Below, one piece after another: positions 633 through 43,568 of a stretch of 64,000 bases of DNA. This stretch comes from Ranitomeya imitator (taxonomy: Eukaryota). The DNA is taken from positions 19,158,001 through 19,222,000 of the forward strand of contig NC_091291.1 of NCBI RefSeq assembly GCF_032444005.1, read 5' to 3'. Every line of letters begins with the position of its first letter. Position 1 is the stretch's first letter. Made by a program: the position numbers and the translations under genes. The notes beneath the pieces were generated by a model. It was not told the DNA's origin. It made no database searches and saw nothing but the letters and a program-made list of their open reading frames with translations.

Positions 633-2520
633 AGTTTCTATCTATCACACTATATATAAGCACCTGCCTATGAGGTACAACCAACAACTTGAATAAGTAA
701 ATACGACAAAAGAGGTCTCCGAATCTAGACGATCTGTCCATAGATGGGAAAAAAAGGAGAAGAAACCAGATATGAAAAGGAAGCTACTCCGAGTGAAGGG
801 CCACAGCTTATAACACACAGAAACCAATGCGACTTTTAGGGTTTGTCTTGCAGACAACTATAAAACATTATACTCAAGTCTGAAATGTTGAAATGTTATA
901 AAGGTCCAAAAAGACACCTGCGATCCCCGGATATCCTAAGGCTACGGTCATGGCCCAAAAACCTGTCCGATCTTCATCCAAAAAATATCAGATGTTTTTT
1001 CATCTCTATTGTCCCCTGTATGCCATCTTATATTATGCATCCAATTTACAAGACCAAAATCAGTTCCCTACGTCAAGAATGGTACTGTATTTTCTGGCGT
1101 ATAAGACTACTTTTTAACCCCTGAAAATCTTCTCAAAAGTCGGGGGTCGTCTTATACGCCAGGTGTCGTCTTATGGGGCAGATGCGGAGTAATCTGCGGT
1201 CGCCGCATATTGTGGGGGGAGCGGTCCCAATGACAAGGTGAGGGGACGCCTCACCGGGAAGGTGTAAGTGAAGCAGAGGCAGAGAAGGAGATAATAGGAT
1301 ACAAGGGCGAGCCAGATGAGTGAAAGAGGAGTGTTTTTCTAGGCACAGCACCGCTCTCTCTCTTTTTTGCATACCCCTGGCATCCCAGACGCTGACAGTT
1401 TGCTTCACTTACACCTTCCTGGTGAGGCGCTAAATGTAAAAATCGGATGCTCTTTGGATGATTTCTTTGGGATCCGATTATTTATTTTTTTTTGTACATA
1501 CCTAAATTTGAAGAGTTTCATTCAAAATATGGAATTGAATAGTGTATGGTGCAATTTTATTTCACATGAACAATCAGTCCACGTTAAAACCTGTCATTTG
1601 GACAGGCAAGTTGAATGACATTGGTTCCGATGCTGTCCATGTGAGCTCAGTTTCTCCACAGTGACCACTCGGACCTGTTGTGTGAACATAGCCTAGAAAT
1701 GAGCTAGTGCTACAAGCAGGCGAGGTTGGGAGAAGGCATGTAATGATCCTCAATAGACATTTTGACATAGCTTTGGAAGACCTGGCCCGTCCATGATATA
1801 CGGTATATGGTTGGATTTTCATTTGAATGTAATACAACACCACCCCTGACATTGATGGCCAAATGGAGCTTCTCTAGGATGGCGACTTTTAGAGAAGTGG
1901 TTGTCTTAACCACTTCAGAACAATTTTTGAGGCAAACTGTATTTTCGACACAGAAACCTTTGCAGACTGTTAAATCGTAAGAATGATTTTTTTTTAGATT
2001 TTATACAGTTTGGAACTTTGTACCAGACCACAGTGCCCGATTCATAAGGTGAGTCCCAGGGAAGATCATAGAATCCTAGAATGTTAGAGTTGGAAGGGAC
2101 CTCAAGTGTCATCGTTTCCAACCTCCAGCTCAATGCAGGAGTCGCTAAACCATCTCAGATGTCTGTTCAGCCTCCATTGAAGGAGAACGCATTCATGGCA
2201 GCCTGCTCCACTCATTGATCACTCTCACTGTCAAAAAGTTTTTTCTAATACCTAATCTGTGTCTTATCCCATTGCTTCTCGTCTTTCCTTGCGCCAATGA
2301 GAATAAAGCTGATCCCTCTACGGAGGGGCAGCCCTTGAGATATTTGAGTTCTTTATCTAATCCCTCTACTCAAACCCTATCAAGTTTTAACGTGTCCTCT
2401 TCCCGCTCTTCTCTCAGCAATTCAGACTGAAGAAAGACAAAGCTATAGATTCCCAATTTTCAGTTCCTGAAATTTAATTTTTTATAATCCAGAAATTTTG
2501 TAAAGTTGGAAAAATTGCGT
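633..2520 (+). pseudogene. Degenerate relic of an IRG3-type gene (promoter/exon 1, intron ends, first codons)
   Basis: 633-890 aligns by eye with 38389-38790. 2385-2520 aligns with the IRG3 acceptor and start (ctctcag...agactgaagaaag...ATAGATTCCCAATTTTCAGTTCCTGAAATTTAA = IDSQFSVPEI* vs MDSQFIVPENE). The GTPase domain is absent. Confidence 0.7.
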
Positions 2521-2868
2521 GTTACAGTCAAGAAGGGGTTCAGTTATGAACAACATGGGGATATCCAGCTACCGCCCAAAAAAAATCATTTATAATAACT
2601 TTATATTCTTCATATGCTCTAAAAAATAGAAATATATAAAAGTAGAAACATTTTTCCCACGCGTTTTGAGCGTTAAAAGCGCTTAATCATAGCACTATAG
2701 CTATCCAAATGAGTGTCGTTCAAACCGTTCCGTAATCACCCACATCTATTACTGGAACCTATAACTCTCCTCCACATGGTTGAAAGAGAAAAACCTATAG
2801 CGACTAGAAAACACGAAAGTGTATATAATACTTATCTCAAGCACACCTCACTGGCCCATGCATTGTGA

Positions 2869-3149
2869 CTAGTGTTGAGTGAACGTGATTGGATAAGGCG
2901 TTATCGGAGGATGATTGGGGGCTAGCCTAGTATCTTTGGCATGCTCAAATAATATGTTTGAGTCCCCACGGCTCTTCAACAGCCGCAACAAATGCAGGGA
3001 TTGCTTGTTTGTTAGGAATCCCTGCATGTGTTGCGGCTGTCGAAGAGCCGCGGGGATCACAAATATTTTTGTAGAACGCCGAAGACACTCGGTTAGCAAC
3101 CGAGCATGCTCTGATAACGCCTTATCCGATCATGTTCGCTCATCACTAG
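2869..3149. mobile_element. Palindromic MITE (family also at 23305-23575 and 47081-47394)
   Basis: Ends CTAGTG(A/T)TGAG(C/T)GA ... TCGCTCATCACTAG with a strongly self-complementary interior. Confidence 0.7.
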
Positions 3150-3168
3150 TCACTAATAGTGACCTGTC

Positions 3169-3960
3169 ATGAACCAGTTTATCGCCACCTTCTTGAAAAA
3201 ACACAGTGGACCTACACCAGCAGATGACATGGCTCCCCAAACCATCACTAATTGTGGAGACTTCACACTAGACCTCCAGCAGCTTGGATTGTGGCCTCTC
3301 CACTCTTCCTCCAGACTCTGGACCTTGATTTCCAAATGAAATTCAAAATTTACTTTCATCTGTAAACAACACCTTGGACCACTGACAACAGTCCGGTTCT
3401 TTATCTCCTTGGCCCAGGTAAGACGCTTCTGGCGTTGTCTATTGGTCATGAGTGGCCGGACACAAGGAATGGGACACTTGTAGCCCATGTCCTGGATACG
3501 TCTGTGTGTGGTGGCTCTTGAAGCAATGACTCCAGCAGCAGTCCACTCCTTGTGAATCTTCCCCAAATTTTTGAATGTCCTTTTCTTAATCCTTTCAAGG
3601 CTGCGGTTTTCCCGGTTGCTTGTGCACCTTTTTCTACCACACTTTTTTCCTCCACTGAACTTTCCATTAATATGCTTGGATACAGCACTCTGTGAACAGC
3701 CGGCTTCTTTAGCAATGACCTTTTGTGGCTTACCCGCCATGTGGAGTGTGTCAATGACTGCCTTCTGGACATCTGTCAAGTCAGCAGTCTTCCCCATGAT
3801 TGTGGAGCTACTGAAACAGACTAAGGGACCTTTTTAAACGCTTAGGAAGCCTTTGCAGATGTTTTTTGTTAGTTATTCTAATTTATTGAGATAATGACTT
3901 TTGGGTTTTCATTGGCTGTGAGCCATAATCATCAACATTAGCAGAAATAAACACTTGAAA
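3169..3960 (-). mobile_element. Truncated Tc1 of a second family
   Basis: ORF 3153..3797 MGKTADLTDVQKAVIDTLH...CSQSAVSKHINGK..GRKRCTSNR...VMVWGAMSSAGVGPLCF is a recognisable Tc1 transposase N-terminus to mid-DDE region. The C-terminus is missing. Confidence 0.85.
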
Positions 3961-4039
3961 TAATGTACATATATATAGAAATATACCTATATACTGTATA
4001 TACACAGACTACAGACACATGACTTGCACATATATACTA

Positions 4040-4760
4040 GTGGGCCATCGTACAGTGTGGGGGCCACGGTAGGGACCATAATACAGCATGAGGGCCCCTG
4101 TGGGAACTATCTTTCACCTTTTGGGCCACTGTAAGGGCCATTATATAGCATGGGGGTCACTGGGAGGACCATCATACAATGTGGGGGGCCACTGTGAGGG
4201 CCATCATACCTCGAGGGTGTCACTGTTGGGGCCATCATACAGTGAGAGGGACTGTTGGTACCATCATATAGCATGCAGGGCACTGTTGGGTCCATCATAC
4301 AGTTTGGAGGATTCTGTGGGGGCCACTATACAGCACATGTGCTATTGGGCGGCCCTAATATAGAGTTGGGGCTACTGTACAGGATGTCATACTGTAAGGT
4401 GACTACTATGGAGGCTATCATACAGCATGGAGTCTAGTGTGAGGGTCATCATATAGCGTGGGGGCATCATACAGCATGTGGACTACTGTGGGGGTATCAT
4501 ACAGTGTAGGGGTATTATACTATAGGGGAGCTGTGGGCCCATTATACTGAATATAGGGGAAACTGTGGGCCCATCATGCTGTGTGTAAGGGAACTTTTGG
4601 ACCATCATATAGACCTGTGGTGGACGTTACACTGGGTATAGAGGAGCTGTGGGCCCATCATATTGTGCATAGAGGAGCTGTGGGGGAATCTTACTGTGCA
4701 TAGGGAGCTGCACATGGGGGTCTCGGGGGATATTATTACAGCAGGTGGAGCTGTAGGGAC
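4040..4760. repeat. Degenerate about 30-bp tandem repeat (GGGCCATCATACAGTGTGGGG core); duplicate at about 24450-25020 and 25680-25900
   Basis: Recurrent ccatcatac/gggcc motifs at about 30-bp spacing. Confidence 0.65.
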
Positions 4761-7700
4761 ACACATGGCAGCAGTGGCTCCTCATTGGGGTATCAGCAGG
4801 ATTAGGAGTTTGCCTAGGTTGGGAATAGATGGGAACGGTACTGGAAATGTGTTAAATAAAATATGTCTGCTGTAAATTCTGCAGATGAGTCTTGGCTGGA
4901 AAAAGTTGTCATGTCAATCTGGGTCAGACTGAAAAGATGAGAAAAGAGAACCCATCAGACAAAACGTCACCTGTATGTCGCCATCTATAACTGTACTGTG
5001 ATCTTTTGTTCTGCAGGACTGATATCTACCACTATATGGTCACCGTGTGGCCGTGTTGGTCTTTGTATAGAGATTATTGTCAGTAAAAACACGGTTGCTG
5101 AGGTTTCCCTATAGTTGAAATTAGGGTGCGCCACCGTAACTGTAAACATAGTTATCTGTTTAGGAGCCAACTCTAATGTTCCCCCCCCCCCCCCCCCGAA
5201 TACCCCCCTGAGTACCCCCCGAGCTTATCCTCTATCTAAGCCTCTAGGTAATGGAAATGGCATAAGGCCAAGTTTCTCTTTAGAAAATGTCACGTAACTT
5301 TCAATTGTGTAGTATTCACTCTCAAACTGCTTACGGCTCTGTGATAACCACATATTGCTGAGGGAGCTAAGTCATTTTTCAAGCTTTGACGTATCAGTGG
5401 TAATAGTGACAGCTCCTCTACTTTCCTGAAATCCCAAGGAACACCATTACAGGTGAGAGATTCTTCCCCTTTATACTCACTGATGTTTATGGTGGGCAGT
5501 GCAAGGAGGCAAAATATGGGGCTCAGTAGCAGGACATGGTTGTGTATTAGTTGTGTTTTGTGATAAGGAAAGGCTGAGACAGATAATATACAGACATAGA
5601 AGAAGTAACTACGACACCAACACAACTTTAGTAAGTATAACTAACTCTACTGAGAAGGTGACCGCTCAGTGTAATCGTTAAAAATGGGAAACTCATCTAA
5701 GGAACATGAGAAGCAATTGCCAGAGAAGAAAAAGCTTACATTAGGAGTTGGAGAAGGCTTAAAAAAAATTCTCAAATGTTTTAACTTGTTCCTAAAAGTA
5801 TGACGGAGACTACTTATATTTGTTATGGTCAAGTATAGTGGATTAGATTCTCTTAAATATCATGATAATTGTTATAAGGCCACCTGACTGACGTATAAAG
5901 ATCAGCCACACATTCACTGGTTAATAGAAGGCTAATTTAATGCTTATTGATGGTCCACCTAGAAGTAGAAGGTAGGTTATTGTAAGAAGCTGAATGTGGA
6001 GCTCCATGACAAAAGGTGACAAAGAAACATGATGCAGATCCATCTCCATTAAATATGTTACCCCAAAACTCTACAGTAGAGGAGAGCGAGCGTGATAAAA
6101 CTGAATTTTGCTCCCTCTACCATGCGCCTGTAGAACAATCGTGAGCACAATTTGGGGAACCAGTTTCCTACTTCTCTCGACTAGTCATCCGCCCTCTCTA
6201 CTGAACCTATAACTTCAACTTTCATAGTACTTTCTCAGACAGAGAACAGTGGAATTGAAAGGTGGACCATGAATTCACTCCTGGGTCTGACATTAAAGTA
6301 TAGCACTCAGAAGATCCTGGAAAAAAAGCAGGTTTGTAAATCACAGGGAGCATGTGGATAAGGTGATCCGTATTCCCAAATGGTTGGGTAAGATAACTAG
6401 AAGAAAAGCATAATATCTTGGTACTTGGAGGAAAAGTTTAGGCAAGGTGATAGACCAAGAAGGAGGTCCAGTTTTGGGGAGGTAGAGAAGCTTAAAGGGA
6501 ACCTGGCATGAGGATTTTACGCCTAAAACTAATGGCATGTATCCACTGCTACTTTCATGTTGTTTAAATTCATATCTACACAAAGAGAAATCTTACCCCG
6601 TAAACCCCAGTCCAGAGCCTCTCATCTAGCCAAATCAGATCTCATACTTCGTACTGACGAGGGCCAATAGCCCAAAACACCGTGTCTGCAAATTGAGATT
6701 CTGATTTGGCTTTTTTTTCTAAGCCATATTGCACGACTCGTTAAAGGGTTGATTGTGACTTGTAGGATTGCTACTCCAACAGGTGGCGCTATAGAGTTCA
6801 AGTCCTCTTTTTCTCTGAAGAAGCAATTTGCATATATCTTTATTACAGAATTTTGTAGCTTCTAAGAAATCCAGGTTTCAACATCATATGCAAATGAGCT
6901 GCAAGTGCTTTGGGGTGAGACATTCCACTGGCAGCTCTCATGCCTACCCTCCACATACACGGCCTGGTATCTGACAGGTTATTTTTATAGTAATTACTTA
7001 CCTTCTCTGCCACGGAAGTTAGACACAAAAGGTGGACGGGGTATATGGATAGAGGGCAGGAGAGCTGCAAGTGCAATGTCCCACCTCAAAGCACTTGCAG
7101 CTCGTTTGCGATTTAAAAGTTGGATTTCCCAGAAACTACAAAACAGATTTCTACAATTAAGGTATGGATTTAATCAGTGTGAAGCGGTTGTATTATTGCT
7201 ATTGGTTTGAGTTGTAAAATCATCATGTGAATTTTTCTTCAGGCAAAAGCCTAAGCAAACATTAGGGAGGCAAAGCAAAAAGGGCGAGGTGCTACTGCCA
7301 CCAGTAAAAGAAGCAGTCAGCTGATCCAACCTACATGCCACTAAGAGAGGTGGCATACTGTATGTACACACCAAGGGACCAACCTATGACAGCCAGCAAT
7401 AAGTACTGTCATTATCGACTTGCCTGACCTCCAGCATTGCCAACAAAAGTGTATTTAAAAGGAACAATGACTCCAGAAAACTCAGAAAGGAACTTATGAT
7501 GATGTAACGCTTGATTAAAAGTGCTGTGCTGGAGAAGTACAGTTAGATCCAGAAATATTTGGACAGTGACACAAGTTTTGGCATTTTAGCTGTTGTCCAA
7601 AACACATTCAGGATACAGTTATATTATCAATGTGGGCTTAAAGTACAGACACTCAGCTTTAATTTGAGGGTATTCTCATCTTAATAGGAGTAAGAGTTCA

Positions 7701-8050
7701 GGAATTACAGCTCTGTAGTATGTAGCTCCCTCTTTTCAAGGGACCAAAATAATTGGACAGTTATCTCAAAAGCTCATTTATGGGCAGAATGGACTTTTTT
7801 CTCTTTAATCCATCATTAATTAAGCAGTTAAAAGGTCTGGAGCTGATTCCAGGTGTGGCATTTTGCATTTGGAAGCTGTTGCTGTGAACCCACAACATGA
7901 GGTCACAGAAGCTCTCAATGGAAGAGAAACAGACCATGATTAAGCTGAAAAAAGAAGAAGACATCCATCAGAGACACAGCAGAAATGTTAGGAGTAGCCA
8001 AATCAAAATTTGGTACATTATTCAAAAAAAAAAGTGAACTGGTGAGCTTA

Positions 8051-8809
8051 GGCTGGTTTCACATTTGCGTTTTTTGCCGCTGCGTTTTTCCGTAAAAAAA
8101 CGCATGCGTTTTTTTTCCTATACTTAACATTAAAAATGCATGCTTTTTTGGCATGCGTTTTGCCGCGTTTTGCCACCGCATGCGTCTTTTGTATGCATGC
8201 GTTGTGTTGCAGAAATGCAACATGTAGCATCTTTTAGCGGCGTTTTTTTTTTGCCGCAAAAAAACGCATGCATTTTTTTGCGGCAAAAAAACCTATTGAT
8301 GTCTATGTAAACGCATGCGTTTTTAAGCACATGCATTTGTTTGCGTTAAAAACGCATGCGTTTTTATAAAAAAATTCAGAAAACACACTGATATGCCACC
8401 CCCCACCATAAAGGTGATAAAGGGATCCTAACCCTATCCCTAAAGGGATCCTAACCCTAACCCTACCCCTAACCCTAAAGGGATCCTAACCCTAACCCTA
8501 AAGGGATCCTAACTCTAACCCTAAAGGGATCCCTATCCCTAACCCGAACCCTAGCTATTTCTGTTTATAGTGGGTTTTTTACTTTATTTTGATGATTGGC
8601 ATCTGTCACACATTTCTCAGCATGCGTTTAAAAACGCAAACGCATGAAAAAACGCATGTAAACGCGTCAAATCGCCGCGTTTTTTTCCCCACATGCAAAA
8701 ACACATGCGTCTAAAAAACGCAGCGTTTGCACGCATTTACATGCATTTTTTCACCATGCTTTTTTTTAAAAAAACGCATGTGTTTTAAAACGCAAGTGTG
8801 AAACTAGCC
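8051..8809. mobile_element. PIF/Harbinger-type MITE
   Basis: TIRs GGCTGGTTTCACATTTGCGTT / AACGCAAGTGTGAAACTAGCC; TTA duplication (8048-8050, 8810-8812); single TTA at the empty site near 28717; interior rich in AAAACGCATG and CCCTAA repeats. Confidence 0.8.
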
Positions 8810-10043
8810 TTAGGTAATCAAAAAGGACTCAACGGTACAGACAACAGTGGTTAGATAATCGCATAATCATTTCCATGGTGAACAAAAACCCTCTCACAAC
8901 ATTCAGCTAAAGGTACCGTCACACTAGACGATATCGCTAGCGATCCGTGACGTTGCAGCGTCCTGGCTAGCGATATCGTCCAGTGTGACACGCAGCAGCG
9001 ATCAGGCCCCTGCTGTGATGTCGCTGGTCGGGGAAGAAAGTCCAGAACTTTATTTGGTCGCTGGACTCCCCGCAGACATCGCTGAATCGGCGTGTGTGAC
9101 ACCGATTCAGCGATGTCTTCACTGGTAACCAGGGTAAACATCGGGTTACTAAGCGCAGGGCCGCGCTTAGTAACCCGATGTTTACCCTGGTTACCAGCGT
9201 AAAAAAACAAACAGTACATACTTACATTCAGCTGTCTGTCCCTTGCCGTCTGCTTCCTGCACTGACTGCTGGCCGTAAAGTGAAAGTGAAAGCACAGGAC
9301 AGCGGTGAGTCACACGTGGCTGTGCTCTGCTTTCACTTTACGGCCAGCAGTCAGTGCAGGAAGCAGACGGCAAGGGACAGACAGCTGAATGTAAGTATGT
9401 ATAACCACAGAGAAAAATGGAGTTCCATACACATATATAAAAATAGTAAACTTTATTGAAAACATATGAAAAAACATACAACAATATAAATGAAGAAAGG
9501 ACAGAAAACCTAGTGGGAAACAAATAAAGCCTCGGCACAAAAATATCGGTACAAAGTATGTACTGCTAAGAAATAATTATATGGCACTCAATAAGTCAAT
9601 AATTATATGGTAATTATATGGCACTCAATAAGTCAGCGTTATAGATATCAAGGACATCATTGGATGCAAAACATGCATCCACAGAATGAATCAAGGTACC
9701 AATGGAAAATCACTGAGTGCTGGCATAAAAATGTGTGTTTAAAGTAACTGTCATAATGACCGACACACAAAAAAGAAACCAAGCAGTACAACTTAATCAG
9801 GAATAGTTTCCTTACCCATAGTGGAAAGACGTAAAGTGCCGAGGTCCCAGGTTGACCCCCCTCATTATGACAGTCACTTTAAACACACATTTTTATGCCA
9901 GCACTCAGTGATTTTCCATTGGTACCTTGATTCATTCTGTGGATGCATGTTTTGCATCCAATGATGTCCTTGATATCTATAACGCTGACTTATTGAGTGC
10001 CATATAATTACCATATAATTATTGACTTATTGAGTGCCATATA

Positions 10044-11783
10044 CCGTATATACTCGAGTATAAGCCGACCCGAGTATAAGCCGACCCCCCTAATTTTGCC
10101 ACAAAAAACTGGGAAAACTTATTGACTCGAGTATAAGCCTAGGGTGGAAATGCAGCATTTACCGGTGAATTTCAAAAATAAAAATAGATCATTATTTCCC
10201 CATAGCTGTGCCATATAGTGCTCTGCACCGTTCATATTTCCCCATAGGTGTGAACCATATAGTGCTCTGCACCGTTCATTGTGCCCCCTAGCTGTGCCAT
10301 ATACGGTGCTCTGCACCGTTCACTGTGCCCCATAGCTGTGCCATATACGGTGCTCTGCACCGTTCACTGTGCCCCATAGCTGTGCTGTGCCATATACGGT
10401 GCTCTGCACCGTTCACTGTGCCCCATAGCTGTGCTGTGCCATATACGGTGCTCTGCACCGTTCATTGTGCCCCATACATAGCTGTGCTGTGCCATATACG
10501 GTGCTCTGCACCGTTCACTGTGCCCCATAGATGTGCCATATACGGTGCTCTGCACCGTTCACTGTGCCCCATAGCTGTGCTGTGCCATATACGGTGCCCT
10601 GCACCGTTCATTGTGCCCCATAGCTGTGCTGTGCCATATACGGTGCTCTGCACCGTTCATTGTGCCCCATACATAGCTGTGCTGTGCCATATACGGTGCT
10701 CTGCACCGTTCACTGTGCCCCATAGATGTGCCATATACGGTGCTCTGCACCGTTCACTGTGCCCCATAGCTGTGCTGTGCCATATACGGTGCCCTGCACC
10801 GTTCATTGTGCCCCATAGCTGTGCTGTGCCATATACGGTGCTCTGCACCGTTCACTGTGCCCCATACATAGCTGTGCTGTGCCATATACGGTGCTCTGCA
10901 CCGTTCACTGTGCCCCATACATAGCTGTGCTGTGCCATATACGGTGCTCTGCACCGTTCACTGTGCCCCATAGCTGTGCTGTGCCATATACGGTGCTCTG
11001 CACCGTTCACTGTGCCCCATAGCTGTGCTGTGCCATATACGGTGCTCTGCACCGTTCATTGTGCCCCATACATAGCTGTGCTGTGCCATATACGGTGCTC
11101 TGCACCGTTCACTGTGCCCCATAGATGTTCCACATAAATTTGTGCCGCCGCTGCCGCAATAAAGAAAAAAAAACACATACTCACCTCCCTTGATTGCAGC
11201 TCCCGGCGTCTCGTTCCGGCGCCTCCATCTTCCCGGCGTCTCTGCTCTGACTGATCAGGCAGAGGGCGCCGCGCACACTGTATGCGTCATCGCGCCCTCT
11301 GCCTGAACAGTCAGAGAGCAGAGACGCCGGGAAGATGGAGGCGCCGGCCGGGAAGATGGAGCGGCGCCCGGCGGCTGGAACGAGGACAGGTGAATATGCT
11401 ATACTTACCTAGTCCTGGCGATCCTCGCGCTGTCCCCTCCTGTCTTCGGTGCCGCAGCTTCTTTCTCTATCAGCGGTCACCGGCACCGCTGATTAGAGAA
11501 ATGAATAAGTGGCTCCGCCCCTATGGGAGGTGGAGCCGCTTATTCATTTCTGTAATGAGCGGTCCCACGTGACCGCTGAAGAGAGGAAGAAACTGCAGCG
11601 CCGAAGCCCGTGGGACGGCAGGGACAGCGCGAGGATCGCTGGGACTAGGTAAGTATACCCCAGCGCCCTCACCCCCTCACCCGCCGACCCCACCGCTACC
11701 GTGACTCGAGTATAAGCCGAGGGGGGCACTTTCAGCCCAAAAATTTGGGCTGAAAATCTCGGCTTATACTCGAGTATATACGG
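10044..11783. mobile_element. pogo/Tc1-type MITE
   Basis: TIRs CCGTATATACTCGAGTATAAGCCGA in inverted orientation, with TA duplication. Confidence 0.8.
10200..11130. repeat. About 49-bp minisatellite (44/49/53-bp variants) inside the MITE
   Basis: Unit CCATATACGGTGCTCTGCACCGTTCACTGTGCCCCATAGCTGTGCTGTG repeated about 19 times; explains ORFs 10325-11176. Confidence 0.9.
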
Positions 11784-14700: not shown

Positions 14701-15224
14701 AGAGAGTTGCAATAGCCTAGACGAGAATGAATAACAGTGACATTAGGCATTCTTGATGAGTGAAAGGCAGAATGAAGCTGAGGGTGTGTTAGATTAATGG
14801 AGATTTATAAATGCAGTGCACGAGAATACAGATTGACTCTGGATGACAGGAAGACGCTATGTTCGAACAATTATTGTTTTGTTGTTGAGTTAATAAAGTT
14901 AAAAAGGAAGAACAAAAAGGCTTACAGTGTGGAGACTGATTGTAGATAACGCATCATTCCACAGATCAGATGCTTTTGCCTGGACTGCGTGTACTATTGT
15001 GAAGGAAGAAAATATAAATTTTCATATTTCCATAGTTCATTCTTAATCTACTTAGACTGCTGAATTAAGTCTTTTATGTTTTGTCCTACAGTTGGAAGTA
15101 GATGAGCAAGAGAACATTTACAGTTTTTCTGATTATTCAGTTACGTCATTAACTGTTTTGCACAGCTGTGGGATGAATGCGATGTCACTACTGGTGCTGA
15201 CACTGCAGATGGGATGGGACTTAA

Positions 15225-31991: not shown

Positions 31992-33170
31992 ATGGATTCT
32001 TCTATCAACGTCATGAGTGACGAAGAAGTCCAAAACATTCGGTCCGCTTTAGAAGAAGGAGACCTCTGTACAGCAACTGAAAGACTTGGCAATTCGCTCA
32101 GGGAAATAGAAAATGCTCCGTTGAACATTGCTATCATGGGAGAGTCAGGAACAGGAAAGTCCACTTTTGTCAATGTCATCCGTGAGATGGACGATGAAGA
32201 AGAAGGGTCGGCCAAAACTGGTGTTGTGGAGACAACAATGAAGCCAACTCCATACAACCATCCACAGTATCCTGATGTAATTTTTTGGGATCTTCCAGGA
32301 ATAGGAACTCCTGATTTTGCGGCTGATATTTATCTTCAGTCTGTTGAATTTAGTTGTTATGACTTTTTCATCATTTTATCATCAGAACGTTTTAAGAAAA
32401 ATGACATTGACCTAGCGAAGGCGATTCAAGCTATGCACAAGAAATTCTACTTTGTGAGATCCAAAGTTGACTCTGACGTGCATGCTTCTATGATCCGAAG
32501 GAAAAAGTCGTTCAATGAAGAGAATGTGCTCAATGAAATTAGAAGTAACTGCATTCAAAGTCTTAAAGATGGAGGAATCACAGAGCCCAAAGTGTTTCTC
32601 CTCTCACTACTGGAGCTGGAAAAGTACGACTTTCAGAAAATGCAGGAAACACTTGAAAAAGAGCTTCCAGAACACAAAAGACACATATTCCTGATGTGTA
32701 TACCCAACATTTCTCTACCAGTCCTTGAGAAGAAGCGTCAGGCTCTCAGGAAGGACGTATGGAAGTGGGCCTTATGTTCTTATGCAGCGCCTGTATTCTC
32801 AGTCCTGTCTGTACCTTCTGGTGCACAAATCCTGATGACAGTAATGATAGGCTACCAGAAAGCTTTTGGCTTGGATGAAAACTCTCTGAAAAAGTTGGCA
32901 GATAAGTTTAGTAAAGACGTTAGTGAATTAAGATCTGTGATTAAGTCCCCTATAGTCATAGAAGAGATAAATGAAGAGATTGTCAACACTTTACTAGAGA
33001 CATATGCCAGTGATAATGCTATAGATCAGTATCTTCGCATATTGCTATGTAATCTAGAATCAGTGGCCATCCCCTTTGGTACCGCTTACCAGACGCTCTG
33101 CGACTTCCTTAATAAGATTGCAGAGGATGCTGAGCGTGTTCTTATGAAGGCATTAGAGTCGCCCCTCTAG
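31992..33170 (+). CDS. irgc: Immunity-related GTPase (IRGC-like), 392 aa; 'IRG2', tandem paralog of IRG1 with divergent C-terminal half
   Basis: Same GESGTGKS / WDLPG / RSKVD motifs. N-terminal 250 aa visibly highly similar to 16273-17469. Acceptor tcttcttcag (AG 31976-31977) sits at the same spacing before the ATG. Confidence 0.95.
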   Translation: MDSSINVMSDEEVQNIRSALEEGDLCTATERLGNSLREIENAPLNIAIMGESGTGKSTFVNVIREMDDEEEGSAKTGVVETTMKPTPYNHPQYPDVIFWDLPGIGTPDFAADIYLQSVEFSCYDFFIILSSERFKKNDIDLAKAIQAMHKKFYFVRSKVDSDVHASMIRRKKSFNEENVLNEIRSNCIQSLKDGGITEPKVFLLSLLELEKYDFQKMQETLEKELPEHKRHIFLMCIPNISLPVLEKKRQALRKDVWKWALCSYAAPVFSVLSVPSGAQILMTVMIGYQKAFGLDENSLKKLADKFSKDVSELRSVIKSPIVIEEINEEIVNTLLETYASDNAIDQYLRILLCNLESVAIPFGTAYQTLCDFLNKIAEDAERVLMKALESPL

Positions 33171-34341
33171 GCATTTTTCTCCAACACAACAAATCATAGA
33201 AAAAGCTCCCAGATATGGCATATAATGAAAAACTAAAATTAAGGAATTAAGAACTGATTCAACAATTCATATAATTGAGCCAATAAAGTTTGTACAATAT
33301 CTACGTGTTTGCAATGTGCATTTGATTTTATTTTTGCGCACAAAAACATCCACCGCGCACAAAACAACACGGGCCCTGAACATGAACCAAGGAGGACCCC
33401 AAGAGAAAACCGGCAGTGTGAGTAAGGACTGTCATAGATATGGAGCCTCAAGACCAGGCTGTAGTATGACATAGGGGGATGAACTGAAAGGGATGTGGAA
33501 AGAAAAAATGAAGGAAATAACTAGACTTATTCCAACATGTCACTCAGTCCATTTAAGAATAAACTGTGTAATCTGTAAATCCGCAAAGTCTCTTTAGAAT
33601 TAGGAACATTTTTTATTGAGAGAACAACTGGGACCTGCTCTAGGGGGTGTGATGAACCCGCACCTCACCAACCCACCTGATGTCACTATTACATCAGAGG
33701 GATCATGCAGTAGGGTCTCCCCACTTTCACCAGTGTGATTTTCCACACCTGTAAGGTCAGCTTCACACAGTTTTACTGAGACACCCCCTGTCCACATGGA
33801 TCATTGAGCACAGAGAATGAGGGGATGTGTCCTACGCAGCCGATGACGTGCAATCACACTTGCTAACAACCCTGACAGGCTGAGAGGCCCTTTCATTAGC
33901 ACCAGTGAAATAGAGCCTTGCCAGCCCGATAGGACTGCCACCAGTTCCTCATTAGATATAAGTCCAGTCTGTCAATTTGATTTTATTGGGCCAGAAAGCA
34001 GCCCGATAGCATGGGAAGTTAAAACCGAGAATACGGATGTGTGCATTCATGAATCGAGATAAAAGAGCAGCCCAATGTTAAATTATATATTTAATTGCCT
34101 TAAGGGCACACTAGATAAAACTCTACATACACAATGGTTAATGATCCATTTTTGTTTTCATTATTATTTACATTAAAACAGCCTACCTATTCAAGTTGGA
34201 AATTCTTCTTAAAGGCCACCTGGATCAATTATCTCGGGTTTCTTTTTTATGTAAACATATGTCTAAGTTTTTTTGAATAATTAAAATATTCTTCGGTGGA
34301 GGTGCAGCTTTTCCTTATGCATCTGAACTGGCTGGGAAGTA

Positions 34342-35947
34342 CAGTGGGGCAAAAAAGTATTTAGTCAGTCAGCAATAGTGCAAGTTCCACCACTTAAAAA
34401 GATGAGAGGCGTCTGTAATTTACATCATAGTTAGACCTCAACTATGGGAGACAAACTGAGAAAAAAAAATCCAGAAAATCACATTGTCTGTTTTTTTAAC
34501 ATTTCATTTGCATATTATGGTGGAAAATAAGTATTTGGTCAGAAACAAAATTTCATCTCAATACTTTGTAATATATCCTTTGTTGGCAATGACAGAGGTC
34601 AAACGTTTTCTGTAAGTCTTCACAAGGTTGCCACACACTGTTGTTGGTATGTTGGCCCATTCCTCCATGCAGATCTCCTCTAGAGCAGTGATGTTTTTGG
34701 CTTTTTGCTTGGCAACACGGACTTTCAACTCCCTCCAAAGGTTTTCTATAGGGTTGAGATCTGGAGACTGACTAGGCCACTCCAGGACCTTGAAATGCTT
34801 CTTACGAAGCCACTCCTTCGTTGCCCTGGCGGTGTGCTTTGGATCATTGTCATGTTGAAAGACCCAGCCATGTTTCATCTTCAATGCCCTTGCTGATGGA
34901 AGGAGGTTTGCACTCAAAATCTCACGATACATGGCCCCATTCATTCTTTCATGTACCCGGATCAGTCGTCCTGGCCCCTTTGCAGAGAAACAGCCCCAAA
35001 GCATGATGTTTCCACCACCATGCTTTACAGTAGGTATGGTGTTTGATGGATGCAACTCAGTATTCTTTTTCCTCCAAACACGACAAGTTGTGTTTCTACC
35101 AAACAGTTCCAGTTTGGTTTCATCAGACCATAGGACATTCTCCCAAAACTCCTCTGGATCATCCAAATGCTCTCTAGCAAACTTCAGACGGGCCCGGACA
35201 TGTACTGGCTTAAGCATTGGGACACGTCTGGCACTGCAGGATCTGAGTCCATGGTGGCGTAGTGTGTTACTTATGGTAGGCCTTGTTACATTGGTCCCAG
35301 CTCTCTGCAGTTCATTCACTAGGTCCCCCCGCGTGGTTCTGGGATTTTTGCTCACCGTTCTTGTGATCATTCTGACCCCACGGGGTGGGATTTTGCGTGG
35401 AGCCCCAGATCGAGGGAGATTATCAGTGGTCTTGTATGTCTTCCATTTTCTAATTATTGCTCCCACTGTTGATTTCTTCATTCCAAGCTGGTTGGCTATT
35501 GCAGATTCAGTCTTCCCAGCCTGGTGCAGGGCTACAATTTTGTTTCTGGTGTCCTTTGACAGCTCTTTGGTCTTCACCATAGTGGAGTTTGGAGTCAGAC
35601 TGTTTGAGGGTGTGCACAGGTGTCTTTTTATACTGATAACAAGTTTAAACAGGTGCCATTACTACAGGTAATGAGTGGAGGAAAGAGAAGACTCTTAAAG
35701 AAGAAGTTACAGGTCTGTGAGAGCCAGAAATCTTGATTGTTTGTTTCTGACCAAATACTTATTTTCCACCATAATATGCAAAAAAAATGATAAAAAAACA
35801 GACAATGTGATTTTCTGGATTTTTTTTTCTCAGTTTGTCTCCCATAGTTGAGGTCTACCTATGATGTAAATTACAGACGCCTCTCATCTTTTTAAGTGGT
35901 GGAACTTGCACTATTGCTGACTGACTAAATACTTTTTTGCCCCACTG
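34342..35947 (-). mobile_element. Full-length Tc1/mariner element (IR/DR type) with intact transposase
   Basis: About 200-bp TIRs starting CAGTGGGGCAAAAAAGTATTTAGTCAGTC; TA duplications at 34340-34341 and 35948-35949; intact ORF at 34558-35580. Confidence 0.95.
34558..35580 (-). CDS. Tc1 DD34E transposase, 340 aa, apparently intact
   Basis: Paired-like HTH N-terminus, GAPRK linker, [20 protein letters not shown] and [15 protein letters not shown] motifs; no stops. Confidence 0.93.
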
Positions 35948-38229
35948 TATATTCTATTTCAATTTGTGGAAAAGTGCACTGTAATAGTCTATGTGCTATT
36001 GCCATCTACGAGTTTGAAATGTGTTCTGCTCCAAATCTATTGATCTGAAAGACATACCGTAATTCAAGATCCAAGAAGACCATATTGTCTTTGGCAATGT
36101 GAGCTGTAAATGATAAATCCCATGTGTTCTTCTAGAGTTGTTCTACAAAAGAGGTTGCCACATATTCTGTGCCAGACTCAATGATAAATAAGTCGTCGAT
36201 ATATCAAGGGTTATATTTAATATGCCTGACATGGGAACTAGACAAGACTGACGACGGGGACTCGAAACTCTCCATAAACGAATTTGCGGAACCTGGGATG
36301 ACTCGAGTACCCATTGTCGTGCCAAGTCACTGCAGGTAAAGCGCATCCCTAAAATAGAATAGGTTATGCTCCAGGACGAATTTTGACCCGCTCAGGAGTG
36401 GCCACTGTTCAGATTGGATAGTCAGATTGGTGGAGACTCAACATGCGGCATCTCATGGGGGAATAACTCGGTCCATACTCCGACCACTGGAGATGGAGCT
36501 ATAGAAACAGCCGAGACTGACTGGCACCAAAGGTAGGGGGCATGGTCAGATGATCGAGAAGTCATTGCATCTACCCACTTCAGTACCATTATTGCCCTTT
36601 ACCTGCACTTTACACTTTTAATAGTTGGCAGGATGGATGATAATAAACAGCAGCGCTTGAAAATTCCAGTAGGAGCTTCACTGAATAACATTACAAAGTT
36701 TAATAGATCCAATTTGCTGATGAAAGACCAGCGAGAAAAATGTCCAGGAGTCTCCCAAAAAGCGAGAACACCGCCTAGAATCCTGAAGGTGTTGGAAAAC
36801 ACCGGGGACCCTGAAATCCTCCTAAACTTTAAGAAATGCAGGTTCCAGGAGGCCTTGGCCATACCCACATGCAGTATCAAGAGGTGCGGGAAAGTAATGT
36901 TGGGGACATGATCAAAAAAGGCATAAATAGAAAAAAAAAATTCTGTCCGAGTTTTCTATCCTCCTTTGCTGTCGATTCTGCACAACATATTTCTCGTGTG
37001 TAAATGAGATGTGTTCAAATCACATTCATTTTGGTGCTACTGAAAATCTCTACCGGTTTACTACCGCAAAGCAGGGCATAAAATCCGCAGCTTTTTTTCT
37101 TTTTATATTTTTAAAAATTGGGTTTAAAGAAAATTTATGAAGCGTTTGGCTCTTAAAGGCTTTGTGTTTCTGTGAACATTCAACTTTAATGCGGTCTTAA
37201 ATTAAGAGATGCTCGGAAAAAAAGTTAAAATGAAAGAATAACAAATGCTATCATCATTGAATCTGAATGATCTGATTGATGGACTCTCTGAACTCCCTCT
37301 GCAGCAAGCACTAGACAGTGCAATACCCAGACTATAGAATGTAAATGGTGTAACATTTTAAATGAAACCCAACTGCAAAAATTATTGTTAGCTCCAAATA
37401 CATTTTGCTGGTGATTTCTGCAGAGTCTGAACAAAGGATCAAAGACTCTAAACTCACTTGTGGGTGTTTCCATGACTTCATTGCCCGGTTCCTTACAGGT
37501 TTCTGTACAACCCGCCATGAAAGACAAAGATCTTTATATTTATTTTGCTAAGGTTTTTTTTCAGGGCTCACACATTTTGCTTTCGATCTAATGGAAATTC
37601 GAAGCAATTGAAGTTAGTTGTGGATTTCTTTTCTATTCAATAGAGAAACTCATCAACAAACCTGCAACTGATCTGCTACAAGAATCGACTTGTTAAGGTT
37701 TGAAAAATCCACACCATAGATCAAATATCGCCATACTTATCAATTCTTTCAGACTGATTGGAATAATGGGAGACATTCCAAACTCCTGGAGGAGTTGGAA
37801 AACTCTCTTGAGAATGACAAATTTTCCCGGAAAGGAAGTTTCAGGAGGCTTTGATTTTTGTCCAAATGCACTTTCAAGAGGTGTTGATAAGAAATGTAGG
37901 GCTCAACTAAAGTTGCACATAAATATCACAAGGGCCTATTAATCAAAAAAGGCGAGGGGGATGCAACAGGTATTACGAGTTTTGCAGGGTTCTCTGCAAA
38001 AGGATTATTGTTGGGTTTGCAAATCTTTTAGCTCAGTTATATTGAAAACATTTCCTGCTCGAGATCCTCATTCTTCCGGCTGCCAATTCTTTAAAGTTAT
38101 CAGGCACAAAACATTTCCGCTACTGTAAATCACTGCAGAATTTCCACAAAGAAAAGACAGAGAAAATCTGCAGCAGCTTTAGGACAAGGAGGGGCGAAGC
38201 AGAGCAAGATCCTGGATGCAGTTTAGTTG

Positions 38230-38476
38230 GGTGGAAGTGGAAAGAGAAACCTCAGACGTGGTCTCCAAGTTATGATGTTTACACATTTTTCATCCTTTTT
38301 GATCCGGCCTAGATTTGTAGTCTGTCCTGCAATCAGCAGTTTCAGTGCTACAGCACATCCTCTCCCGCCCAGTGACGTCTCCTCTTTCAGTTTCTACAAT
38401 TCACATTATGTACAAGCACCTCCCTATGACGTCACATCTATAGCTTGATAAGTAGGAAGAAAGAGCAGAGAGCAAG
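38230..38476 (+). promoter_or_regulatory. Candidate interferon-responsive promoter and non-coding exon 1 of IRG3
   Basis: ISRE-like GGAAAGAGAAACC 38239-38251 and TTTCAGTTTC 38385-38394; GC box 38362-38370; TGACGTCT 38373-38380; perfect CRE TGACGTCA 38427-38434; donor CAAG|GTATGT at 38477 that could pair with the acceptor at 42314. Confidence 0.55.
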
Positions 38477-41400
38477 GTATGTAAGATCTCATTATCAAGA
38501 GGATCTGTCTATGGATGGGGAAAAAGGGAGAAGAATCGGGGTATAAAAAGCAAGCAACTCCAATGTGCATGGTCATAGATTAACACACTTCTCCGACATT
38601 CTGCACGATCAGTTTCACTGATTATCACTTTGCTGTTGCAGATACGTTGTGACTGACAACAAGAAAAATTCCACTTTATATTTTTGCATTATCGTTTTTC
38701 AAAGTGTCCAGAAATGAGAGCATTATAGAATTGGATATTTTAGTGGTTGCCCCGAGAACAGCTTTAAAACGTTATACACAAGTCTGAAATGGTAGCTACA
38801 ATTCTAAGAATGAGCTGAAGCTACAGAGATGTGGCTGTGTATGATCGACCAGGATAGTACCATGTGTGGCACAACATCTGACTGCCAGTATGGTCACTTT
38901 GAGAAAATCGCACTAAATTCAACCCAGTTAGAGGTTTGATAGCAAGTTGCACTTGACTTCGCCTCTATACGTTGCTACTAGTGATGAGTAGAGATGGGCG
39001 AACTTGAACAGTAAAGCTTGGCATCCGTATCGAACATCTACTGTTCAGGCACAGATATCAAAGGCGTTCCCCCCCCCCAACTCCGAGTGTTTCTAATGCT
39101 ATCATGTGCATGACAACACGGCAAACACTGCTTCTGATCGGCGGTAAGATCATTACCGTCGGTCAGACAGCCGCAGTTCCCAACCTGTCGAATGAGAGCG
39201 AAAGACCGCAGCTGTCACTGGCATCAGATGATGGGACTACTCCCTCCATCATCCTACACTTGCTGCCGCTAATAACAGATAGAGCAGGTAGCGGCTGATG
39301 GGAGTATTAATCAGCCAGGACCTGTGCTCTAAATAAATTAAAGAAAAATGACTTGGGTTCCCCTGTATTTTTTGATAACCAGCCAGGCAAAACTGACAGC
39401 TGCGGGAAGCAACCCTCAGCTGTCAGCGTTACCAAGGCTGGTTATCAAAAAGAGGGTTCCCCACATTGTTTTTTTTAAAATAAATAAAAACAAAAAAAGT
39501 GTGGAGGTTCCCTTCATTTTTGACAAGCAGCCAAGCTAAAACAAGCATCTGAGGGCTGGTATTCTCAGGATGATAAAGGTCCATGTATATTGGTCCGCCC
39601 TTCCCTAAAAACAGAAGCCCGCAGCCGCCCCAGAAAAGGCATATTAGATGTGCCAATTCTGGCTCTTTGCCCGACTCTTCCCACTTGCCCTGTAGCGGTG
39701 GCAAGTGGAGCTCATATTTGTGGGGATGATATCACATTTGTTTTGTCCAGTGACATGAAGCCCATGAATTAGTAATGTAGAGGTGCATGTAAGACACCTA
39801 TCAGTTACTAATCCTATAGTGGTATTGTAAATAGACACAGACAAAATAAAGTCTCTTGAGGTACCGTCACACTGAACGATATCGCTAGCGATCCGTGACG
39901 TTGCAGCGTCCTGGCTAGCGATATCGTTCAGTTTCACAGGCAGCAGCGATCTGGATCCTGCTGTGCCATCGCTGGTCAGCGCAGAAAGTCCAGAACTTTA
40001 TTTCGTCGCTGGACCTTCTGCAGACATCGCTGAATTGGCATGTGTGACGCCGATTCAGCGATGTCTTCACTGGTAACCAGGGTAAACATCGGGTTACTAA
40101 GCGCAGGGCCGTGCTTAGTAACCCGATGTTTACCATGGTTACCAGCATAAACATCGGGTTACTAAGCGCAGGGCCACGCTTAGTAACCCGATGTTTACCC
40201 TGGTTACCAGCGTAAACGTAAAAAAAAAAAACCACTACATACTTACATTCCGTGTCTGTCCCCCGGCGCTGTGCTTCCCTGCACTGTCAGCGCCGGCCAG
40301 CCGTAAAGCAGATTACAGTGGTGACGTCACCGCTGTGCTTTCCGGCTGGCGCTCACTGTCAGTGCAGAGAAGCAGAGCGCTGGGGGACAGACACGGAATG
40401 TAAGTATGTAGTGTTTTTTTTTTTTTACGTTTACAGAGATGTAGATCTGTGTGTTGTCAACATAGAGATGATACTGAAAACTGTGAGATTCTATGAGCTG
40501 TCCCAGGCTGTCTTAGGTTTGTCCCACACGTCCAGATAATTCCGGTACCGGAATTATCCGTGTCCGTGTGCTTACGTAGCACATCAGTGTGGCACACGTG
40601 CGGCAGCCGTGTGCCGACTGAGGACCACACGGACCGTGCAGGAGGCAGCGCTACAGTTAAGTGCTGTCCCCTGCGTGCGGTGCTGAAGCCGGTATTCATC
40701 TCTTCCTCCCAGCAGCGTTCGCTGGAGAGAAGGAATGAATAATCAATTTTTTTTTCTTTCTCCTTAAAAATAAAGTTTGTGCGTCCCCTCCCGCCTCCCA
40801 TCCCCTGTGCGCCCCCCACTTGCCAGGAAATACTCACCGACACCCAGCTCCAGCGATGTCTCCTCTCAGCGCCGGCAGCAGGCCCTGTGTGAGCGGTCAC
40901 GTGGTCCCGCTCATTACAGTGAGGAATATGCGCATATTCCTCACTGTAATGAGCGGGACCACGTGACCGCTCACACAGCACAGGCTGCAGCTGCTGAGAG
41001 GAGACATCGCTGGAGCTGGGTGTCGGTGAGTATTTCCTGGCAAGTGGGTCCGTGAAATCATGCTGACATGTGCAGAGACACATTGATTTTAATGTGTCTA
41101 CATGAGTCAGTCTCTCCGGTACGTGAGGAAACTGTCACCTCACATACCGGAGCCACTGACGTGTGAAACCGGCCTTATGGATGCCTCTCCATTACTAAGC
41201 TGAGGGCTTGATGTCATCGAACAATGCAAAGGTAACATTAACCCCACAAATATGAACCCCACTTGCGACCGCTACAGGGCAATTCGGAAGAGCTGGGCAA
41301 AGAGCCAGAATTGGCACATCTACTAGATATGACTTTTCTGGGCGGCTGTGATCTGCTGTTTTTAGGCTGGGGGGGCAATAACCATGGGCCCTTACCAGAC

Positions 41401-42338
41401 TGAGAATACCAACCCCCAGCTGTCTGCTTTAGCTTGGCAGGTTGTCAAAAATTGGGGAGACCCCACGTCGTTTTTTAAATTATTTAAATAATTTAAAAAA
41501 CAATGTGGGGACCCCGCTATTCTTGATATCCAACCTTGCTAACGCTGACAGCCAAGGGTTGCAGTCCGCAGCTGTCACTTTTGCCTGGCTGGTTATCAAA
41601 AATACAGCGGACCCAGGCATTGTTTAATTATTTATTTAGAGAGCATGCACCTGTTGATGAATACTCACATCACCCGACGCCTGCTCTCGCTGTTATTAGC
41701 AGCAGCACCCAACAGTGATATGAATAGGCACCAGTGTTGCAACAGTTTTATAAATGCAGGCTCTGACAGTGGCTGGAGACATTTCTTTATGATGGTGCAG
41801 TAGACAATGCAGTAAATACCCACAAAAGAGAATATGAAAGGCAGCACTCACCAGTCTCCTCTGTGAATTAAAAGACCTTTATTTTAACATAATCCAGGCT
41901 ATTAAAATAAAAGACAATTCACAGAATGACTGGTGAGTGCGGCCTTTCACATTCTCTTTTCTAGATATTTGATGGGAGCAGTAGTCCCATCAGCTGACAC
42001 AATTGACCAGAGGTAAACTCTTTACCTCTAATCAGTGTGGGAACCGCGGCTCTATGACCAGCGGTAATGATTTATCCCGATCAGAAGATGTTTGCTGCGA
42101 TGTCATGCCCTATTGAAAACACGTGCATGCTCGGCCAAGTAAAGTGAGCATGTGTATGGGGGTCGAATCAATAGCCATTAATGGACATTCTCTGCTAGAT
42201 CAATTTAGGACTACATTGCTCAATTCTGGTCAGACCCAAAAGCCGATTTTTTCTTTTTGCCTTTAATCTGCACACAATGGGTTCTAATGTGTCGCCGTCT
42301 TCTTTTTCCCTCAGGCGCTTGAGACTGAAGAAAGAGAT

Positions 42339-43568
42339 ATGGATTCCCAATTTATAGTTCCTGAAAATGAACTGCAGGAGATGAAGAACTTCTTTGAAAA
42401 TAGAGATCTTGCAGAAGCTGTAGAAAGTGTGAAGAGATGCCTGGAAGACATTGACCAAGTCACGTTGAATGTTGCCGTAACTGGAGAATCGGGATCAGGA
42501 AAGTCAACTTTTATCAACGTAATCCGAGGCCTTGGCGATGAGGAAGAAGATTCTGCCAAGACAGGCGTGGTCGAGACAACCACAGTCCCATCACCTTATT
42601 TACACCCGCATCACAAAAACGTGAAATACTGGGACCTTCCCGGGATCGGAAGTCCTGTATTTAATCCGATGGATTATCTGCAATTGGTGAAGTTTCACCA
42701 ATATGATTTTTTTCTGATCATCACAACCGAACGCTTCAGAGAATGTCACATCCTGTTAGCACAAGCCATCAAGTCCATGGGGAAGAAGTTCTACTTTCTG
42801 AGATCCAAAATAGACTCGGCAATAAAAGGATGTCGACGAAGAAGGACAAACTACTGCAAGGATGAAGATCTACTGAAGAAAATCCACGATGACTGCGTAA
42901 ATGGTCTCCGAGCTGGAGGTATCGAGAACCCTCGAGTGTTTCTAATTTCCAGTCTAGAACCTGAAAAGTATGACTTCTACTTGATCCAGAAAACGCTAGA
43001 GGACGAACTTCCGAGTCACAAGAGACATGTATTTCTTTTGTCTCAGCCCAATTTTTTCCACCAGGCCGTGGAGAAGAAGAAAAAGGTCTTTCTATCGCAA
43101 ATCTGGAAATGGGCCATCGTCTCCGCTATGAACGTTGTGACGTCACAAAGGTCGGGTGCGAGTAGTATGTCGTGTGTTCCGTATTTATCAGCCAATGGTG
43201 ACCTCACCCTCATGGTCAATGTTTTGGAAGAGTACAAGAAAGCTTTCGGACTGGACGCGAGATCCCTTAAAATGCTATCGGATACCTTTGGGAGAGATCT
43301 CGAAACTTTGAGATCAATGATCAGAACCACAACGGCTTTGGAGGAGATAACTCCCGAATTGGTTTTCCATCACCTAAAGAGTCAGGGTCTGACGGACATG
43401 GGTCGTATAGTGACAGCATGTGTAAATCAGATTGTTCCGCAAATTGGCACATTGGCAAGTGGAGGAGTTGCCTTCGGGACGACTTACTGGATACTAAGCA
43501 GCTTCTTATCAGCTATGGCAGAAGATGCTACCAAGGTGCTGACGATGGCATTAGCGACTTCTGACTAA
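42339..43568 (+). CDS. irgc: Immunity-related GTPase (IRGC-like), 409 aa; 'IRG3', type A, adjacent to smg9
   Basis: G1 GESGSGKS, AKTGVVETT, WDLPG, G4 RSKID, LPSHKRH. Acceptor tctttttccctcag (AG 42313-42314) upstream of the ATG. Convergent with smg9, as human IRGC is with SMG9. Confidence 0.95.
   Translation: MDSQFIVPENELQEMKNFFENRDLAEAVESVKRCLEDIDQVTLNVAVTGESGSGKSTFINVIRGLGDEEEDSAKTGVVETTTVPSPYLHPHHKNVKYWDLPGIGSPVFNPMDYLQLVKFHQYDFFLIITTERFRECHILLAQAIKSMGKKFYFLRSKIDSAIKGCRRRRTNYCKDEDLLKKIHDDCVNGLRAGGIENPRVFLISSLEPEKYDFYLIQKTLEDELPSHKRHVFLLSQPNFFHQAVEKKKKVFLSQIWKWAIVSAMNVVTSQRSGASSMSCVPYLSANGDLTLMVNVLEEYKKAFGLDARSLKMLSDTFGRDLETLRSMIRTTTALEEITPELVFHHLKSQGLTDMGRIVTACVNQIVPQIGTLASGGVAFGTTYWILSSFLSAMAEDATKVLTMALATSD

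Follow-up and report, generated by a model that had tools for sequence, protein, structure and literature searches.

The mouse IRG clusters are the best described relatives of the locus analysed here. In these genes the coding sequence occupies one long exon, preceded by at least one untranslated 5' exon, and the promoters are of the interferon-stimulated response element (ISRE) type (Bekpen et al. 2005, PMC1297648). They also contain two-gene units, in which Irgb1, Irgb3, Irgb4 or Irgb8 is coupled with Irgb2, Irgb5 or Irgb9, and these units were block-duplicated in tandem in what has been termed 'duplication-divergence cycles' (PMC1297648). Two further systems are relevant: the 'death and resurrection' of human IRGM together with broken IRG genes in primates (Bekpen et al. 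2009, PMC2644816), and the ruminant CEACAM1 paralogues, whose coding regions exemplify the escape from concerted evolution in tandem immune families (PMC7042247). A paper on amphibian IRG clusters was not found in the literature searched. Here we analyse such a cluster in the poison frog Ranitomeya imitator (assembly GCA_032444005.1), within a stretch of 64,000 nucleotides (contig NC_091291.1, positions 19,158,001 to 19,222,000; hereafter the window, with coordinates counted from its first base). Three intact genes (IRG1, IRG2 and IRG3) lie next to smg9 in this window, and IRG1 and IRG2 are each preceded by a relic of an IRG3-like, or A-type, gene. We consider it probable that a single dead, unprocessed stump of the gene type that adjoins smg9 is present here in two copies, psiA1 and psiA2, left by the ordinary birth-and-death evolution of an immune cluster.

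The frog locus resembles the mouse Irgb pairs in gene plan, in the ISRE promoters and in the block duplication of two-gene units. It differs from them in that one partner of the duplicated unit is only a 5' stump and in that the amphibian cluster occupies the smg9 position. Furthermore, the frog B-type genes IRG1 and IRG2 are not fused into tandem transcripts, since in-frame stops are read from the sequence ahead of both start codons. With IRGM, the locus shares lesions at the start of the reading frame and a cluster that both shrinks and grows. However, IRGM kept a truncated reading frame and was re-expressed, whereas the frog relic retains about 30 broken codons and no transcription of it was seen. 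The likeness to CEACAM1 lies in a mosaic in which some parts of the unit are kept uniform through gene conversion or unequal exchange and other parts stay divergent. In the frog, however, the homogenised part is non-coding DNA with a pseudogene stump, and the divergent part consists of the B-type coding exons.

All three intact open reading frames are encoded on the forward strand and belong to the interferon-inducible GTPase family (Pfam IIGP, PF05049). IRG1 (16273-17469, 398 amino acids), IRG2 (31992-33170, 392 amino acids) and IRG3 (42339-43568, 409 amino acids) each carry a G1 P-loop and match nearly the whole 375-position profile, with E-values of 2.5e-115, 1.8e-112 and 7.6e-90, respectively. 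IRG1 and IRG2 are 71% identical as proteins and either is 44-47% identical to IRG3, and we have therefore retained the names B-type for the first two (B-alpha for IRG1, B-beta for IRG2) and A-type for the third, which has one-to-one orthologues across hyloid frogs.

The relics were detected by self-blastn of the window at word size 7. The IRG3 stretch 38389-38588 matched 21082-21267 at 69% identity (E about 1e-15 to 1e-22) and 633-818 (E 1e-20), and 38738-38794 matched 21283-21339 and 834-887 at 77%, with 834-887 aligning to 38738-38791. Around the start of the coding exon, 42247-42428 matched 22790-22971 at 67% (E 5e-16) and 42281-42412 matched 2384-2518 (E 1e-11). At both sites the four blocks are colinear with IRG3 and on the same strand. 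The block scores were 98, 92, 77, 62, 47 and 45 bits, compared with a best score of 34 and a mean of 25.6 in 200 dinucleotide-preserving shuffles of 38200-43700. Including IRG3 itself, the blocks occur in three copies in the window and nowhere else in it, always in gene-like order. The presence of two relics of an A-type IRG gene ahead of IRG1 and IRG2 is thereby confirmed. An earlier note, made from the sequence alone, had proposed the order psiA - IRG1 - psiA - IRG2 - IRG3, with 633-890 and 21082-21330 aligning with the IRG3 promoter, exon 1 and intron start, and 2385-2520 and 22830-22975 with the acceptor and first codons. This order and both alignments were recovered here with slightly shifted ends (633-887, 21082-21339, 2384-2518 and 22790-22971), and they stand well clear of the shuffled controls that the note had asked for. 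Its description of the front blocks needs one adjustment: the homology is real, but exon 1 of IRG3 ends at 38476, and the beginning of the intron makes up most of 38477-38794, in partial agreement with the note.

The structure of IRG3, to which the relics have to be compared, is provided by a spliced A-type orthologue transcript from another hyloid frog (L001). Bases 1-60 of this transcript lie on 38414-38476 and bases 60-140 on 42315-42391, with a GT at 38477 and an AG at 42313-42314. The promoter and non-coding exon 1 thus span 38240-38476, intron 1 spans 38477-42314 (3.8 kb, enlarged by inverted-repeat inserts at 39108-42108), and the coding exon spans 42315-43568 with its ATG at 42339. The only strict ISRE core of the window is located at 38240 (38240-38250), and a second ISRE-like motif lies at 38385-38394. 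IRG3 therefore has the plan known for IRG genes, namely a reading frame on one long 3' exon, an untranslated 5' exon and an ISRE promoter. The same region is recognisable in sequences from other frogs: an unspliced contig from a further species (L003) aligns with the acceptor region, slightly better in the relics than in IRG3, and an annotated Dendropsophus A-type protein with read-through from exon 1 maps to 38404-38439 and to both relics. The N-terminal extension of protein P0009 also maps to the promoter and exon-1 region 38240-38476.

Both relics begin, relative to IRG3, at 38389, inside the proximal ISRE, and keep the 90 promoter-proximal bases. Exon 1 is covered with a gap of 15 bases, but the donor GTATGT is replaced in both copies. 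Two blocks from the start of the intron follow (38494-38588 and 38738-38794 in IRG3), then the last 70 or so intron bases with the acceptor AG (42247-42314 in IRG3), a 24-base leader and about 30 codons. The front part of psiA1 (633-887) accordingly consists of half of the proximal ISRE, an exon-1-like stretch without its donor and the intron-start blocks, and that of psiA2 (21082-21339) is homologous to 38389-38794. The acceptor part of psiA1 (2384-2518) has its AG at 2416-2417 and the first 25 or so codons, with a 13-base deletion relative to psiA2, whereas that of psiA2 (22790-22971) has its AG at 22857-22858 and the first 30 or so codons, with a 4-base gap relative to IRG3. All four parts are on the forward strand. 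As the earlier note had read, the start codon is ATA instead of ATG in both copies (2445 and 22887), and codon 11, GAA in IRG3, is TAA (2475 and 22917). What is left of the reading frame is thus disabled, and the retained intron and promoter sequence shows that the relics are unprocessed.

The two relics lie in segments that are far more similar to each other than the neighbouring genes are. Young copy 1, which carries psiA1, spans 1-14133 and continues beyond the left edge of the window; young copy 2, which carries psiA2, extends from 20450 to 29798, and the two match each other on the forward strand. Insertions specific to the first copy are located at about 6505-6988, 8050-8815, 8911-12326 and 13143-13979. 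The mismatch is 0.3% over most of 1-2000, about 3% at 2800-4450 and 5-7.5% at 4610-13143, and the divergence K reaches 0.11 at the right end (13979-14133). Over the whole segment K thus ranges from 0.003 to 0.11 and rises stepwise from 0.003 through 0.03 and 0.065 to 0.11, after which it is 0.30. The units are mosaics: their relic-bearing part, the most similar of all, is much more recent than the genes downstream of it. psiA1 and psiA2 themselves differ by a K of 0.017, lie in a region with 0.3% mismatch over about 2 kb, and have all lesions and both end points in common. We found neither differing lesions nor differing ages of the kind that would mark independent pseudogenisation. To judge from the sequence, psiA1 and psiA2 appear to be copies of one relic and to hold no record of two losses, and the repeated, separate loss of A-type copies that the earlier note had envisaged is not upheld.

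Two repeats were observed in the young segments. At the right end of copy 2, an element of about 160 bases (29794-29956) reaches a summed RNA contig depth of up to about 8000; many contigs extend past it in both directions, the pattern to be expected of a short dispersed repeat that many transcripts carry, and it has no Rfam match. A tandem satellite at 10198-11136, found only in unit 1, shows self-matches at offsets of 130-817 bases and contains a spurious open reading frame of 199 amino acids.

The divergence of the B genes belongs to an older layer. The old segment around IRG1 (14989-19231, forward strand), which includes the IRG1 coding sequence and a Tc1-type insertion at 17483-19100, matches the segment around IRG2 (31677-33323, forward strand), which holds the IRG2 coding sequence, at a K of about 0.3. 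The coding exons of IRG1 and IRG2 differ by a dS of 0.317 and a dN of 0.157, and the flanks give a K of 0.30 just upstream (14989-15214) and of 0.28 on the 3' side. In a maximum-likelihood tree, IRG2 groups with the Phyllobates terribilis protein P0135 (support 100/100) and IRG1 with genes of R. variabilis, D. tinctorius and P. terribilis, and the dendrobatoid B expansion forms a clade of 14 sequences (support 100/99). According to this tree, the split between IRG1 and IRG2 predates the divergence of Ranitomeya and Phyllobates. The relics differ from IRG3 by a K of 0.27-0.40 over about 400 alignable bases, which is of the same order as the distance between IRG1 and IRG2. In addition, codon 4 of the relics specifies Gln and codon 5 Phe (Ile in psiA2). 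Gln4 and Phe5 are found in all five dendrobatoid A-type proteins, whereas eight other hyloid sequences carry Lys4 followed by His, Asn or Tyr as residue 5. These two states, together with the K of 0.27-0.40, would place the origin of the stump within the dendrobatoid lineage, at about the time when the B genes multiplied.

The simplest reading, which we find plausible, is that one duplication, long ago, copied a unit made up of a B gene and an A gene or at least its front part. This agrees in part with the proposal of the earlier note that an ancestral unit of one A-type and one B-type gene was tandemly repeated: a single old duplication of B plus the front of A fits both the distances (K 0.27-0.40 versus dS 0.32) and codons 4 and 5, but the presence of a whole A gene in the repeated unit is not supported. 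The history would then have run as follows. Hyloid frogs would have held one B-type and one A-type gene. On the way to the dendrobatoids, B and no less than the front part of A would then have been duplicated in tandem, giving the arrangement B-alpha - psiA - B-beta - A - smg9, and we infer that this first event duplicated B and A together. Much later, in the lineage of Ranitomeya, a stump segment of about 14 kb may have been duplicated again or else homogenised between the tandem units by unequal exchange or gene conversion, and the 0.3% mismatch over about 2 kb suggests that the last exchange was very recent. The B coding regions and their near flanks would have stayed apart throughout, at a K of about 0.3.

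Two routes to the young layer may have operated, alone or in combination. The first is a recent tandem re-duplication of a block made up of B-alpha, the relic and the spacer, with its junction at 14133-14989. This would predict a copy of B-alpha just to the left of the window, for which the B-alpha gene P0123 on the same chromosome, 90% identical to IRG1, is a candidate. The second route is repeated gene conversion or unequal exchange between the older units.

Several points weigh against this history. The relics are not independent witnesses, and lesions would be transferred between them by gene conversion, which leaves a little room for two separate deaths. The distance between the relics and IRG3 is taken from about 400 bases that are partly under constraint in IRG3, and the dating is therefore rough. 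The dendrobatoid marker consists of two codons only. Beyond 130 bases of the B 3' flank, no shared sequence was detected between the spacer from IRG1 to psiA2 and that from IRG2 to IRG3, and the copying of B and A as one piece is therefore indicated only indirectly. Lastly, since the first exons of IRG1 and IRG2 were not located, the B genes may, with low probability, make use of part of the young segment.

The strongest alternative concerns what the stump was before it became a stump. The remaining 380 or so A-type codons were found neither in the relics nor elsewhere in the window by blastn and tblastn. A weak tblastn match at 24119-24253 (E 0.73, in a search admitting E-values up to 10) had no partner blocks and was rejected as chance. 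Because no A-type coding sequence beyond codon 30 or so was seen, the copy may never have been complete. It is tentatively possible that the relic was never a gene, but the front piece left at the junction of the units when an old tandem duplication broke near codon 30 of the A coding exon, which later exchanges between units then copied on. A break within the coding exon would account for the complete lack of later codons, none of which appears in the following 9-12 kb although non-coding flanks of the same age can still be aligned. Moreover, the old units 14989-22971 and 31677-42428 are about equal in length, at roughly 6.5 kb, when obvious transposon inserts are left aside. However, the 8.7 kb between the end of psiA2 and the next old segment (22971-31677) would all have to be later insertions in this case, and the homology between IRG3 and the relics fades near 42428-42450 rather than ending sharply. 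The left edge of the relic is also cut, inside the promoter, and deletions or insertions therefore clearly acted on it. Whether a whole gene later lost some 380 codons or a partial copy was cut at the duplication breakpoint is, for the stump we propose, about evenly balanced.

A different history, in which several repeats of an intact A and B unit arose and the internal A copies then died independently of one another, seems unlikely. The alternating order of relics and genes is real, the distance from the relics to IRG3 is close to that between IRG1 and IRG2, and gene conversion could have overwritten lesions that once differed. Nevertheless, the small divergence between the relics and their shared lesions and end points, in a segment far younger than the split of IRG1 and IRG2, speak against separate deaths, and no second, differently broken A copy was traced in the window.

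It is also conceivable, albeit quite improbable, that the stump segment is a hot spot of ongoing unequal exchange that alters IRG copy number in Ranitomeya, with a second set of B-alpha, B-beta and A genes as its product, or that it carries a regulatory region or first exon shared by the B-type genes. The latter would explain why the segment is nearly identical between units while the coding exons stay apart. The related view that the relic itself was retained as a first exon, alternative promoter or enhancer of the downstream IRG1 and IRG2 genes can be confronted with transcript data and appears very improbable. Some observations could be taken in its favour. A 638-base RNA contig of IRG2 matches 31975-32538 with one difference, showing that the gene is transcribed and that its coding exon starts at about 31975-31978, and it carries 74 further 5' bases that have no place within 27200-31975. 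The first B-type exon must therefore lie more than 4.8 kb upstream or elsewhere. Furthermore, the relic region is the most similar part of the two units, and when 22 words sampled from 21060-21345 were looked up in public runs of R. imitator, two RNA runs contained 2 of the 22. On the other hand, none of these words occurred in the RNA runs that contain 0.8-1.0 of the IRG3 words, or in those that yielded assemblies of IRG3 and IRG2. Both copies have lost the donor GTATGT and half of the ISRE, and recent exchange, rather than constraint, is the apparent source of the 0.3% mismatch over 2 kb that derive mostly from repeats. In addition, the 5' untranslated region of a B-type orthologue contig (L005) maps nowhere in the window above shuffled controls. 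With its donor lost, its ISRE halved and its frame broken, the stump shows no detectable function now, and no sign of its transcription was found.

Finally, chance similarity or a dispersed repeat is a highly improbable explanation of the matches: neighbouring repeats do exist (for example, 6-65 and 20455-20514 match an inverted-repeat element inside the IRG3 intron), but they are not colinear with the relic blocks, whose scores, order and strand have been described above, whose words are missing from almost every RNA and DNA run of R. imitator apart from two DNA runs of one sample, and whose sequences are parts of the mRNA and acceptor of the orthologous A-type gene in other frog families and are therefore not a dispersed repeat, the outcome that the earlier note had named as fatal to its proposal and that did not materialise within the window.

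Comparison of IRG2 with the plan of IRG genes is confined to its mRNA, as its promoter was not found. Several candidates for upstream B-type sequence were considered and rejected. Contig L004 is unspliced and cannot be aligned upstream of the acceptor, and the N-terminal extensions seen in Bufo isoforms derive from repeats internal to the coding exon and not from an upstream exon. The short members of the IRG2 protein cluster (P0163-P0167) proved to be unrelated peptides. IRG1 is 80% identical to a B-type protein of Bufo bufo, which exceeds its 71% identity to IRG2, and IRG2 is only 66% identical to the Bufo protein. A long branch carries IRG2 and its Phyllobates orthologue, and the overall dN/dS between IRG1 and IRG2 is 0.5.

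The chromosome carries additional members of the cluster. P0160, whose identity to IRG3 is 96%, is another intact A-type gene and is followed by a minus-strand gene for 134 amino acids that is not a full smg9 and is possibly a partial copy of it. P0162 is a second B-beta gene (94% identical to IRG2, 394 amino acids), and the B-alpha gene P0123 has a 163-amino-acid IIGP fragment 2 kb upstream. A larger recent duplication may have produced these three genes as paralogues; alternatively, they may belong to a second haplotype that was not collapsed in the assembly. Being outside the window, they are compatible with the suggestion of the earlier note that further units may lie to its left. The claim that all A-type copies were lost except the one next to smg9 does not hold in view of P0160. 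Transcript variation was seen at 32515-33172: in runs X2 and X15 the RNA contigs show 26-28 differing sites relative to the window, together with a P0162-like 6-base insertion near 33037-33039, and run X1 carries the window form without any difference; the X2/X15 form may be either an allele or a paralogue.

Downstream of IRG3, smg9 lies on the minus strand at approximately 45785-52100. Two of its exons (47744-48055 and 51343-51531) matched solved SMG9 chains with an E-value of 1e-13 in a PDB sequence search, and a Pfam search with the exon pieces gave no useful match. A partial smg9 copy was sought in the left part of the window and was not found, and a search of the whole window against Rfam at gathering scores returned no matches. 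Beyond smg9, a GC-rich (65-68%) repeat at 52750-55450 is open in several frames and corresponds to an 801-amino-acid gene in the gene table of the assembly. It is followed by a long array (56600-63800) of a 9-base word, mostly at a spacing of 86 bases.

Repeats are also found within and around the IRG genes. The IRG3 intron contains nested inverted repeats at 39108-42108 (39261-39783 versus 41184-41707 at 78%) and self-complementary stretches at 40070-40434 and 40815-41048, and related pieces occur at 8911-9401, 12091-12196, 6-65 and 20356-20514. Two Tc1/mariner elements, at 17483-19100 just after IRG1 and at 34340-35957 about 1.2 kb after IRG2, are 98% identical and in opposite orientation. 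The latter retains an intact transposase reading frame of 340 amino acids (34558-35580) with helix-turn-helix and DDE domains, and the family was probably active recently.

Altogether, the locus is a new amphibian example of the known mode of IRG cluster evolution; this is ordinary biology of modest interest. It offers a dated, stepwise example of the growth of an amphibian IRG cluster at smg9, in which an old duplication would have left a stump and a young event would have copied it. The idea of repeated gene loss is thereby corrected. The locus also serves as a caution that relic counts overstate the number of losses where tandem units exchange sequence. The findings do not change what is known of IRG biology, but they are useful for the annotation of immune loci in poison frogs.

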